From positions 52,886,001-52,950,000 of the forward strand of contig NC_088859.1 in NCBI RefSeq assembly GCF_963853765.1: 64,000 nt of DNA, written 5' to 3'. A model generated the notes under the pieces. It ran no database searches, had not been told where the DNA came from, and saw nothing but the letters and a program-made list of their open reading frames with translations. This DNA is from Magallana gigas (lineage: Eukaryota). This document shows positions 13,737 through 43,016 of the stretch, piece after piece. Position 1 is the first letter of the stretch, and the number at the start of each line of letters is the position of its first letter. Both the position numbers and the translations under genes were made by a program.

Positions 13737-14810
13737 CTAGCAAACTTTCTTCTCACAGCTGACCTGGAAATGAAGGGAGAACATATGAGATAATAAATAG
13801 ACCATGAATCAAGCTACAACTGTATCGAATTCTGTTTTCTGACTGAAAACGGAACAAAGCTGTAATAAAACTTACTGTTCCGTACAAAGACAAACAAGAG
13901 CACTTGCTTCCACACTGATCCACCGCCACCGTGTTACCGAGGGCAATAAACAGGTCGCCATGGCGGCACCCTGTTTAACACCAAAGAGTTAGCACTATGT
14001 TCTTATAGACTTGTTACAGGGTTAAAAAAGGAGGGGCGTAGATGGAATTGTAATAATCAGGTTCACTGTTAATTCTGTTAGATTGTGGATTAATTACTGT
14101 GATTAGAACTACTTAGTCTTGGGACGGTAGTATTATGTTATATAAAACAATATTTACCTGGCTGACAGGTACACGATATGGCGGAAGCGGAGGGACACAG
14201 GAAGTTGTTTCCAACCGACTGATCCACGTACATACACACCTCACCCATCGCACAGTTGTTACTCCTTGGAAAAAAATATGGATGTTATGATATCGATAAT
14301 ACATCAAAAAATGAATCAGTCATAATAAAAGTAGACGCTATTCGGGATTTTTAGTATTTTGTTTACTTACATGGAGTTGCAAGGTTTGCCGATCTTTGGT
14401 GGTGGTCCAATATCTCGTCCCGGTGCCAGATCCCCGCGGAGCGGTCCGGAATCGTCAATTACCGGATCCACCGGATTAATTATTACTGGTCCGGAATTAT
14501 CCGGAATGATCGGTTTAGTCTCTATCGGCGGCTGAGGCTGAGGGAACAGCGGCAAGTTCTGACCAGGGTCAACAATAGGCTGTTCTATGTTTTCAAAAAA
14601 CGTCAGGTCCATGGGGGAAGGAGCAGGTATATTCCACTGCGGCCATCGAGGAAAAGGCATCGGCTGGGGGAGAGGAAACTGCGGTCTATAATAGTGGACA
14701 GTAGGAGGGAAAGGCATAGGTCGTTTCACGCAGTTTTTCCTCCTTTTGTAAGAATAAGCGTAAGTTAATGAGAATAGACACAGAACCAAAATAGTAATTT
14801 GCAACTTCAT
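13737..14810 (-). CDS. Secreted family member A (222 aa): signal peptide, Pro-rich region, 12-Cys module
   Basis: Exons 14810-14371, 14264-14158, 13970-13876, 13763-13737 (phases 2,1,0). Starts MKLQITILVLCLFSLTYAYS. Module: KPCNSMSNNCAMGEVCMYVDQSVGNNFLCPSASAISCTCQPGCRHGDLFIALGNTVAVDQCGSKCSCLSLYGTVSCEKKVC*. Confidence 0.9.
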
Positions 14811-15697
14811 TGTCCTTGCTTATCAAAATACAATATGCAGTTGTTTGCGGCCTTGTTAGTCTATATAAGTGACTGATGACGTTTCTGATGTGGGACCGAA
14901 ACTAATTGGACGTCAGTGTGTAGTCGGAGTTCTAAATTATGACCATCCATCAAATATTGACGGCACACGTAACGCCATGCACGCTTCTCTCTACACGAGA
15001 GAAAGGACACGTCTCATTGGCTTAATGTTCATGACCGTCCAATCAAAGAGATGGTTACAGGGGCTTGTTCGGTGACGGGGTCTTGAGGAATGTCTTGCAA
15101 TACATCGATGTTTTCTACACCCTGGGGGAGTATATTTACCGAAGGAAATGATTCAACTGTTTGTAACGTGGGTGAATTTAGGTATGGCCAGATGACCACT
15201 TGCGTACTCTGACGACAGTTTGAAAAAAACTTCCCCAAACTCAGCAGTTTTATGTCCTTTGTTCTCTCAACATGGATTTAATTAATATTAATCACCGCAT
15301 GATATGCACCCACCGTCTTTAATTTAACAGGTGTTATCTGCAAATAAGTTTTAATTTATAGGTGACAAAGTTGAAAATGATAAACTCAGCTGCTCATAGG
15401 ATAAAACACTCATAGTACAGGGACAAGCCTATAATTATATACACATAAACATCATTTGAAAAAGAGACACAACTCGCTTAGTAAATTACAAAAACATACA
15501 TTATTTTTTAAATATTTTATTTTATTTGTGTTATACATTTGCATGAAAATATATGTATGGTACATGATCTTTGGAATGCATTAAATAGTTCTTTGTAAAA
15601 GATACGGATATATTCTGTCAGATTTCATGGTGTAAAATCGAATAGTTTTCCGTTGAGGTTCATGTAACCCTCATACTATCAGTGCAGCCATATACAT

Positions 15698-40800: not shown

Positions 40801-43016
40801 GGCAACGGGAGGGAACGATGAGGAGACAGATCCTAGGATAACGGGCAACGTGAGGGATCCCAATAGTAATCGTATGGATTCACAGACAGCCCAATCTGGA
40901 TTCAATGTGCGAAATCCAGAAGTAAGCGTCAACCCACAGCCATCCGTCGCTCCCACTACTAGACGGTTCATAAAGAAAACAACAACAATCAGGAGGTTTA
41001 TTGTAGATCCGAATGAAAACCAGACCGCCAACTCGTCACAAACTGCTACTGCACAAGGTTCTGACCCCAATGCTAGCCTTTTTGCAAGAATGAATTTCGG
41101 TTTCAGCAACATAAACACGTCTTCAAACACCAACACTGGTGCCTCAACAAACATGGCGGATACAAGCGGTATGCCTAGAATTATGGGAAATCAAAACTCT
41201 CTTCAAACAAGTCGATTTTCTCAGAGCGTTCTACCTGGAAATATCGGAGGTACTAATTCGTTTGTTAATGCAGCAGACTCCACAAATAATGAAAACAGAC
41301 AACCTATAAGGACAAGATTTGCAACGGCTTCTGATCCACAAAGTCAAAGCAGTAGAACTATAGCCGGGCAAGCTCCAAACAGTATAGCAATGGATCCGTC
41401 TTTCGCCTCCAATATGGATCCCTCAGTGAATCAAGATACAATAAATAGATTTGTTTCAACATCGAACATGGCGGATTCTGGCAGAACGCCTCAAATAATG
41501 GGCGTTCAAAATTCCCTTCAAACTAGTCGATTTTCGCAGAGCGTTCTACCTGGAAATACCGGGAATATTGGGGGCTCAAATTCGTTTGTAACAACAAGAG
41601 GCTTCAATAATGACGAAGATGGTCGGCCATCGATGACAAGATTTGTGACTTCTTCAGATCCACAAAGCCAAGGAACCGGAACCAGGCAAACTTCAAATAG
41701 TATCTCCACCAACTCAGCAATTAGTCCTTCTTCAATAGAGACTCGATTTGCGCCCTCAAGCACTGGGAACTTGTTTAGATCTCTGCCAAGTGTTGAAGGC
41801 TCTGGCTTCACTAATAGTGGATTTCCAAGCGCTTCCGGTCAAAACATTGGAATTGGTGGTTTTGTAAGCACCAATGCAGGCGGATCCCCGGGAACCCAGA
41901 ACTCAGAGAGTTCTATTTTTGAGAGATTCGGTGGTACATCGGCTGGTTCTGGGTTCCAGACATTGAGATCAACAGGAGACAATTTTGCAGTACGATCGCG
42001 ACAGGCGTCTAATAGCTCTGTCGTGAGAAACAGTGCTGGGTCAAGGAATGGTAACTCAAACGATGTCACGATTATAGAAACATCGAGAAGAAATGTGGTT
42101 CTATCATCAGAAAATCCTGGTGGCAACCCCGGCGGAGAGAGGAACGGCGAAGTTGCCCGGGGATCCACACTCCCGCCGATAGTTCCTGTGAATGACACAC
42201 AATCCTGTCTAAGGTCAGTGCTAGAGCACTCAAATCTATCCAACCCAGTAGAAACTTGCACATTATCATTTACGTGATCTTAATTTCAATCACATGCTTA
42301 CACAAACCTTATATTGCCAGTAATAGAGTATGTACATATGTGGCTAGCTGCATAATTCATCTTATGAAGTTAAAAAATATGCACAAACATTATCCTTGGA
42401 TACTAATCCTGCCAAAGTAACGGGACTTATCAAGATAGCAAAATATCAGTTTATCAATAGTTTATATATATAATTTTTTTTAAACACAGTATCGGTTGTC
42501 CGACGGGTGAGCAGTGTACATTCAACCAGAATTTCCTCTGTCCTGAGTGGGCCGAGGCCTCTGCTTGTCAGTGTCGACAAGGTGAGTACCGCTTTCTCTT
42601 CTTTGAGTTTGTCGTGATTCTGGTGGAATTTCTTTTCTACTTTTGTCTTACATTTCAGGATGCCAGGCGTACAACCGATTCATACCACTCGGAACAAGAC
42701 TGAGCGTCGATACCTGTGGCAATGTTTGTGTGTGCAACAACAATGACGGAATCGTAAGTGTTTGTTCTTAGTTGGGGGAGGGGTGTTTGTGTTTGAAGCT
42801 ACCATAATAAATTTTTTTTGGGGGTAGGGTTGGGGTTGTTGTTATTGCTGTTGTTTTTGGGGGGATTTCTCTAGAATATTGACTGGAAACACCCCCCCCC
42901 TCTCTCTCTCTCTCTCTCTGAGACTGATATAAATGATGTCGGAATATATAAGAATTGTCAACATAAAAACTCCTTATTTGTTCCAGGCGGACTGTACACA
43001 GACACCTTGCAATTAA
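37865..43016 (+). CDS. Secreted family member G (about 1521 aa): N-terminal hydrophobic signal-like segment, Gly/Pro/Phe-rich start, long Ser/Thr/Asn-rich region with Asp-Pro repeats, 12-Cys module
   Basis: Exons 37865-42213, 42490-42581, 42659-42753, 42987-43016 (phases 2,1,0). Module: QSCLSIGCPTGEQCTFNQNFLCPEWAEASACQCRQGCQAYNRFIPLGTRLSVDTCGNVCVCNNNDGIADCTQTPCN*. The last 21 aa of the track ORF are intron read-through. Confidence 0.92.
39515..40065 (+). repeat. Coding repeat array of 18- and 21-bp units (RTDPLDI / RRDPST), usually as a 39-bp pair
   Basis: About 27 Asp-Pro units spaced 6-7 residues apart. Confidence 0.92.

Follow-up and report, generated by a model that had tools for sequence, protein, structure and literature searches.

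A 64-kb stretch of the Magallana gigas genome (contig NC_088859.1, positions 52,886,001 to 52,950,000 of the forward strand, henceforth referred to as the window) contains six genes, designated A, B, C, E, F and G. These were confirmed as a real paralogous cluster of secreted proteins with one common Cys domain. The interpretation favored here, to which we assign about an even chance, is that the products may be matrix or mucin-like secreted proteins that share a disulfide-rich binding end-domain and form an old tandem family of six oyster paralogues. The genes are already present in public annotation without a name; what is new is the domain, its strict bivalve range, its single-copy use and the long-conserved synteny of the six genes. 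Secreted tandem families that combine a conserved Cys-rich end domain with variable low-complexity regions are themselves a familiar theme.

Long open reading frames of this eukaryotic sequence terminate at GT donors. Exons were joined at GT...AG sites only, with each candidate read in its own orientation. Six-frame reading with these explicit GT/AG joins yielded six complete in-frame genes, with A, B, C and E on the reverse strand and F and G on the forward strand (Table 1). The models end exactly at 13737 and 43016, and thus agree with an earlier note, prepared from the letters alone, which had proposed six genes with one Cys module. A hydrophobic signal-like N-terminal segment is present in all six genes, each of which has a low-complexity first exon of 0.3–4.3 kb followed by the Cys module of ~75 residues, and Cys residues outside the module are almost absent. 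The two introns described in the earlier note, one of phase 2 after Cys1 and one of phase 0 ahead of the last Cys pair, were found in all six spliced models, the former 2–4 codons past the Cys1 position. A phase-1 intron between Cys6 and Cys7 is present in A, B, F and G and absent from C and E. Twelve Cys had been claimed for every module; this number was counted in A, C, E, F and G, but the B module contains 10, lacking Cys1 and having Tyr in place of Cys3. The joint absence of these two residues from B suggests that Cys1 and Cys3 form one disulfide. An open reading frame (ORF) between C and E, initially set apart from E as “D”, proved to be the last exon of E, since the phase-0 acceptor at 24028 runs AECQKLTC directly into the E tail ORF and the Saccostrea proteins show the same layout of exon 1, module and tail. 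The assembly gap lies inside the spacer between E and F, more than 1.7 kb from the start codons of both genes (nearest coding bases 27437 and 31449), and therefore no exon or reading frame depends on it. When a hidden Markov model (HMM) of the module was run against the stop-free six-frame segments of the window, exactly the six genes were recovered (exon-level E 2e-5 to 2e-28), and no further module copies were detected in the six-frame translation of the 64 kb.

The same joins were observed in independent oyster gene models. B corresponds to M. gigas and C. angulata proteins of 182 amino acids (aa); 4 of its 182 residues are different in M. gigas XP_034315060.1, and 8 of 182 in K1QNY2. The Saccostrea models of A (219/220 aa), C (390 aa) and E (“mucin-2-like”, 1410/1385 aa) contain these joins as well, and the AFDB entries for M. 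gigas C (384 aa) and B (182 aa) have the lengths of the spliced models. An uninterrupted coding sequence, running from a signal peptide through a low-complexity region to the complete module, was identified in a 936-bp JGI contig (sample 3300018951) from another bivalve; mRNAs of such architecture therefore exist. The sample series is presumably a marine plankton metatranscriptome, in which case the genes would be expressed in larvae.

Table 1 Coordinates of the six genes, their internal features and neighboring features in the window.
Feature	Position	Strand	Details
Gene A	13737..14810	-	222 aa; exons 14810-14371, 14264-14158, 13970-13876, 13763-13737
Gene B	15698..16712	-	182 aa; exons 16712-16408, 16159-16038, 15931-15837, 15724-15698
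Gene C	17947..19375	-	384 aa; exons 19375-18633, 18480-18297, 18174-17947
Gene E	23132..27437	-	1346 aa; exons 27437-24478, 24364-24181, 24028-23132
Gene F	31449..33379	+	452 aa; exons 31449-32554, 32684-32790, 32931-33028, 33332-33379
Gene G	37865..43016	+	1521 aa; exons 37865-42213, 42490-42581, 42659-42753, 42987-43016
RGD tripeptide of A	14430..14438	-	residues 125-127; context SGPLRGDLAPG
Last exon of E (“D” of the earlier note)	23132..24028	-	located between C and E; encodes the last Cys pair (AECQKLTC) plus the tail
Gly-X-Y run of F	31938..32324	+	43 unbroken triplets, (GQPGFN)n; Pfam Collagen, Tandem Repeats Finder (TRF)
Second Gly-X-Y run of F	32388..32486	+	11 triplets
Assembly gap (N run)	29204..29399		4-kb spacer separating E (start 27437) from F (start 31449), which are divergently transcribed
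A-side flanking gene	3072..7453	+	two large ORFs; outside the family; marks the cluster boundary
G-side flanking gene	51954..54185	+	single-exon astacin/CUB/EGF metalloprotease, 743 aa (Pfam); outside the family

The distribution of the family was determined with a search profile built from the window exons only (trimmed-fragment alignment A4). Against 1.84 billion representative proteins, 30 matches were obtained at E ≤ 1e-3, 18 of them at E ≤ 1e-10. All named matches are bivalve proteins, and the rest are ORF fragments without a name that come from Logan or ENA assemblies. Members were found in oysters (Magallana gigas, Magallana angulata, Saccostrea echinata and Saccostrea cucullata), a pearl oyster (Pinctada imbricata), scallops (Argopecten, Ylistrum and Mizuhopecten), mussels (five Mytilus species), the unionid Sinanodonta and the mactrid Mactra. 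In each full-length match, a signal peptide and a low-complexity region precede a single module. The conserved Cys1–12, the Gly after Cys2, FIPxG and DxCG(N/S) were recovered by the profile as family traits, with B as a 10-Cys variant. The relatives are annotated as “uncharacterized” or “hypothetical”, save for automatic names such as mucin-2-like, mucin-17-like, and VWFC- or EGF-like-domain-containing. A metagenome scan with P0007 gave no match, and a region search with one Mytilus module returned the query only, which is a limit of the word index. A module-profile search of proteomes and Pfam, which the earlier note had named as a check, thus returned only bivalves among its named matches and sub-threshold scores in Pfam. 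Judged by these matches, the 12-Cys module is a separate bivalve-restricted domain family.

The pairing of a conserved module with variable regions was borne out by comparison of Magallana with Saccostrea, in which the modules are 73–87% identical and the first exons 47–73%. A is 77% identical to its Saccostrea orthologues (219/220 aa) overall and 86% identical in the module. Comparison of the six first exons with one another by blastp gave nothing convincing apart from one 19-residue patch, so that their description as unalignable held with this one exception. The patch, S-N-K-x-x-E-P-x-x-x-[RK]-P-L-x-P-I-[VI]-K, comprises residues 178–196 of C (18788-18844, -) and residues 471–489 of E (25971-26027, -), and is visible also in the C-type proteins of Saccostrea and Pinctada. 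It fits the view that C and E are the closest pair, as neither has the middle intron and each carries a C-terminal extension.

All six genes are present in Saccostrea echinata (JAVQLB010000002.1, 2.09–2.16 Mb) in the order and orientation of the window, and all contain the module. The order there is astacin, G (1799 aa), F (405 aa) and, on the opposite strand, E (1410 aa), C (390 aa), B (196 aa), A (220 aa) and a 1694-aa gene. The C orthologue is XP_061169055.1 (390 aa). The F orthologue (405 aa) is at the syntenic position with its module present, as is, by position, the “mucin-17-like” G orthologue of 1799 aa, the model of which is fused to a downstream gene. The flanks correspond as well. 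On the A side, the ORFs at 3072-7453 are 78–79% identical by tblastn to the 1694-aa gene adjoining Saccostrea A, whose own CH-domain match is faint. On the G side, the metalloprotease of the window (Pfam Astacin E 7.7e-39, CUB E 1.5e-11; signal-like N-terminus) has a 741-aa Saccostrea astacin at the equivalent position, to which the 743-aa window protein is 56% identical.

Gene adjacency was also observed beyond the oysters. In Mytilus galloprovincialis, members of 977 and 265 aa lie side by side in that order, and after them comes a CH-domain gene, a type of neighbor also seen beside oyster A; in M. coruscus a 1353-aa member precedes the 265-aa member. A Pinctada gene model consists of a C-like exon 1 (ending ...ETCHKT) fused to an A-like gene, which implies that C-like and A-like genes are adjacent there as well. 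Argopecten members have near-consecutive accessions on one chromosome. Because of the adjacency in Mytilus, Pinctada and Argopecten, the cluster is, as judged by gene order, older than the oyster-mussel split. A tree of the modules gave good support only to oyster orthologue pairs and weaker support to a C-type clade of oyster, scallop and mussel members, and its depth was not resolved.

The regions joined to the module differ from gene to gene. A has a Pro-rich region with an RGD tripeptide, followed by a 12-Cys module that ends on the C-terminal Cys. The Saccostrea orthologues of A have the GPLRGD context as well, and it recurs in the C-terminal tails of the Mytilus members P0011, P0037 and P0038; in oyster A and Mytilus C-type proteins this sequence could be an integrin-type cell attachment site. 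Relative to the module, GP[LT]RGD lies ahead in oyster A and past it in the Mytilus members (P0011 residue 339, P0025 residue 1295), with similar flanks on the pattern II(N/E)PV...(S/A)GPLRGD(L/F).PG. In B, an acidic and then an Arg-rich region precede the module.

C and E have the module core on a single exon. C has a His/Pro-rich region ahead of it and a 67-aa C-terminal extension. E begins with a His-rich N-terminus, which is kept in Saccostrea, and continues through a Thr/Pro mucin-like region to the module core and a 290-aa tail. The tail contains seven G-I-[STH]-[IL]-G-G-[VI]-I-[YN]-[IV]-P motifs, 28–51 residues apart, and ends in KRSSIKSLKIKKMDPAFG. It is 75% identical to its Saccostrea counterpart, compared to 52% for E exon 1, and gave no Pfam family above cut-off. 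An AlphaFold2 (AF2) model of the tail (GISIGGVIYIP region; three sequences) had a predicted local distance difference test score (pLDDT) of 28 and was unusable. A mucin-like Thr/Ser/Pro composition is common to E and G, for which the RefSeq orthologue names are mucin-2-like and mucin-17-like. The region of G is rich in Ser, Thr, Asn, Arg and Asp and contains Asp-Pro/Arg repeats of 21/42 bp, “DPLDIRRDPSTVRT”, ahead of the module. A perfect (CT)34 microsatellite is located at 37063-37131, ~0.75 kb upstream of the G start codon.

F has a Gly/Gln/Pro/Asn/Phe-rich region ahead of the module. Its GQPGFN unit equals two collagen triplets, and the Pfam Collagen model (PF01391) scored 69.8 bits against a cut-off of 27.2. 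TRF resolved the array into units of 18 and 72 bp with copies 95% identical, and by this copy identity it is a young 18/72-bp tandem amplification. Saccostrea F exon 1 contains similar repeats in which the Gly register is broken and runs do not exceed 6 triplets. Because of the young array and the broken register, a triple helix is possible in M. gigas F but is not a trait that the gene has conserved. When F exon 1 was used as the query for homologues, collagens, MARCO and C1q proteins dominated the matches, and no orthologues were found.

Each protein consists of two parts. The first differs in character from gene to gene and is long, biased in composition, quick to evolve and probably disordered; the second is a compact, mostly beta domain of ~75 residues with six predicted disulfides (five in B). 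In the favored interpretation, the proteins would be parts of an extracellular matrix or of a mucus-like secretion. The first part would supply the material property, whether hydration, metal binding, elasticity or RGD cell attachment, and the second would be the stable globular end, binding either a partner common to all or its fellow domains. This role is proposed by analogy with the VWC-type domains that terminate mucins, VWF and procollagen IIA. Hints of a matrix role are the mucin-like composition of E and G, the His-rich head of E, the Gly/Gln/Pro/Phe repeats of F and the GPLRGD of A.

Several results weigh against this interpretation. No Pfam model reached its cut-off with the module exons of the window or with 19 family modules, and the best scores, 15–21 bits, covered the C-terminal half only. 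All structural likeness was sub-significant (Foldseek E > 0.1, VIA Z ≤ 4.5). The even number of Cys in the module leaves no free thiol, which argues against intermolecular disulfide cross-linking of the CTCK type, and the conserved FIPxG and DxCGN residues could be purely structural. Literature searches by accession, locus, peptide motif or keyword gave no description of the family.

The module was characterized further by profile and fold searches. AF2 modeling on the 19-sequence module alignment produced a mostly beta structure with a pLDDT of 88 and a predicted template-modeling (TM) score (pTM) of 0.73. Among AFDB clusters, significant matches were obtained only to M. gigas C and B and to one Mytilus coruscus member, all others having E > 0.1. 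A profile search of PDB sequences gave nothing at E ≤ 10. With no Pfam model at cut-off, no PDB sequence match and only uncharacterized database relatives, the view of the earlier note that the module belongs to no named family was upheld. The sub-threshold Pfam matches were to VWC2L_C (PF23331; 15.2–20.8 bits, from the exon-3 halves in B, F and G plus a single Mytilus module; gathering cut-off 27), TILa (PF12714; 6 of 19 members, best 18.7 bits; cut-off 27) and Pacifastin_I (PF05375; cut-off 27.9). VWC (PF00093) matched none of the window exons or 19 family modules even at E ≤ 1–10, and TIL gave no match in any Pfam scan.

The weak fold matches agreed with one another. The module model matched collagen IIA VWC weakly (TM 0.38–0.47, root-mean-square deviation (rmsd) 2.5, Z 3.4), as it did the VWC2L C-terminal domain (TM 0.45, probability 0.85, E 0.3, 33% identity), with KCP, chordin, CRIM1, Sog and Jagged as further weak neighbors. 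FnI fingers reached Z 4.5, and weak matches were also seen to the TIL/E modules of MUC2, MUC5AC, VWF and FCGBP. Language-model features agreed with VWC-type neighbors at scores below 0.8. Taken from the predicted model, the C-terminal ~40 residues of the module (Cys7 to Cys12) weakly resemble VWC-SD1, pacifastin and FnI fingers. No relatives of the N-terminal six-Cys half were identified in the profile and fold searches. An EGF reading of that half was rejected on spacing (CxC then x3-C).

Other explanations were considered alongside the favored one. Next in probability, though doubtful, is an assembly role: the module would be a novel domain, peculiar to bivalves, by which six chemically different polymers are co-deposited into one bivalve-only material, with the cluster as a conserved toolkit. 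If this were true, candidate materials would be the hinge ligament, the periostracum, the larval shell matrix and the larval byssus, and the polymers would be collagen- or elastomer-like, mucin-like, His-rich and metal-binding, Pro-rich with RGD, and composed of charged repeats. The interpretation in the earlier note, a co-evolving toolkit for an extracellular material (shell or periostracum matrix, cement, mucus or egg coat), was supported in part, for the paralogous secreted cluster, the common Cys domain and the mostly unrelated low-complexity regions; the docking or assembly role of the module is putative.

The principal rival, which we consider unlikely and slightly behind the assembly domain, holds that the C-terminal half of the module may be a pacifastin-like serine-protease inhibitor, with the variable last loop as its reactive site and the low-complexity region as a tether within a matrix, giving protection from proteolysis. 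The pacifastin consensus is C-x(9-12)-C-N-x-C-x-C-x(2-3)-G-x(3-6)-C-T-x3-C, and the Cys pattern of the module, C-x17-C-G-N-x-C-x-C-x4/5-G-x2/3-C-[T]-x3-C, is near to it. PDB pacifastins superpose on module residues ~40–80 (TM by target 0.54–0.69, rmsd 2.4–2.9, about 35–40 residues). The last loop, Cys11-x4-Cys12, is the most variable part of the module and often begins with Thr, and in 10 of 17 members, counted by eye in the alignments, its second residue is K, F, Y or M, all typical of P1. However, Pacifastin_I matched only 3 of 19 members, at 15.7–19.4 bits (best E 8.7e-4), all below the cut-off of 27.9; the first loop is 17 residues long, and there is one extra residue in CGNxC. VWC SD1 and FnI fit about equally well, the best-conserved residues are located in the first hairpin, away from the putative reactive loop, and the N-terminal six-Cys half would be left unexplained.

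The remaining two explanations are less likely than a pacifastin-like inhibitor. That the module is a divergent VWC-type ligand-binding domain of extracellular regulators, which would bind BMP/TGF-beta in the manner of chordin-type VWC domains or be cytokine or immune factors resembling arthropod single-VWC proteins, is judged improbable. VWC2L, brorin, KCP, CRIM1, Sog and chordin-like proteins are its nearest neighbors by features and fold, and two Mytilus coruscus members are automatically named “VWFC domain-containing protein” in UniProt. Against this, the module lacks CxxCxC and CCxxC and has no Pfam VWC match, mucin-like or repeat-rich regions of 1000–1450 residues are atypical of signaling regulators, and six paralogues with wholly different low-complexity regions would better fit material diversity. 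Least probable is that the F module trimerizes or registers a true collagen triple helix, with the family derived from a short-chain collagen: the 43 + 11 unbroken triplets do end ~20 residues before the module and match Pfam Collagen at the score given above, but the perfect run is a recent amplification by its copy identity, the register is broken in Saccostrea, G/Q-rich members of scallop and mussel are not Gly-X-Y, and the other five genes have no collagen-like region.

Other features of the window were recorded. A tandem satellite of ~180 bp with at least 7 copies is present at 11226-12430 (+), with the same stop-free segment GTLIVRITPPTVLKIGSCSFADQLYIYQRCAYC in each copy, and long antisense ORFs span it. 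Between G and the astacin gene, at 46583-47371 (+), is a 262-aa Ser/Glu-rich ORF with a weak Saccostrea counterpart at the same place, apparently fused by RefSeq to the G orthologue (1799 aa). Two neighboring ORFs of 356 and 435 aa, at 57062-58132 (-) and 58789-60096 (-), each contain an internal hydrophobic stretch.

The protein materials of bivalves, including shell matrix, periostracum, ligament, byssus or cement, and feeding mucus, are of technical and evolutionary interest. Most of their known components are, to our knowledge, lineage-specific low-complexity proteins with no traceable history. Here, a folded domain and kept gene order make very different low-complexity proteins traceable across oysters, pearl oysters, scallops, mussels, a unionid and a mactrid, and the family offers a handle on how low-complexity regions arise and diversify behind a fixed anchor. 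As a small, confidently modeled domain with six predicted disulfides, the module lends itself to studies of what it may bind and whether it inhibits proteases. Should the six products belong to one material, the cluster would show in compact form how modular biomaterials are encoded.

Among known systems, VWC-type domains are the best Pfam, Foldseek and Atlas neighbors of the module. With SD1, the VWC2L C-terminal domain (PF23331) and TILa (PF12714), its C-terminal half has in common the pattern C-x17-C-x3-C-x-C-...G-x3-C-x4-C and perhaps a small beta-sheet finger, and in mucins, VWF and procollagen IIA the VWC modules are likewise terminal on a long extended or glycosylated region. VWC domains are defined by ten Cys with CxxCxC and CCxxC motifs. 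The bivalve module instead has CxxxCxC (e.g. CGNTCSC) and no CC pair, ends in C-x4-C without an SD2, carries an extra N-terminal six-Cys half, and occurs always in single copy and in bivalves only. With pacifastin (PF05375) the module shares a closed six-Cys finger, the Asn in CGNxC, the Gly before the fifth Cys, a frequent C-T-x3-C and partial superposition. Its longer first loop and C-G-N-x-C set it apart, only the distal G...C-[T]-x3-C being in register, and unlike the pacifastin light-chain domains it adjoins another Cys-rich half and is joined to very large low-complexity regions.

Gel-forming mucins, VWF and FCGBP lack a counterpart here in several respects: Pfam detected no VWD, C8, TIL or CTCK in E or G, and with an even Cys count there is no obvious free Cys for multimerization. 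E and G resemble them in being secreted and in combining a Ser/Thr/Pro-rich center with a Cys-rich end. In molluscan shell-matrix families, spidroins and byssal preCols, a conserved terminal element is joined to fast-evolving repeats. No sequence link to these proteins was found, and the literature searched and the fold-matching Swiss-Prot models included no member of the module family; the likeness lies in the tandem paralogues and in the His-rich and Gly-rich blocks that the oyster cluster shares with them.

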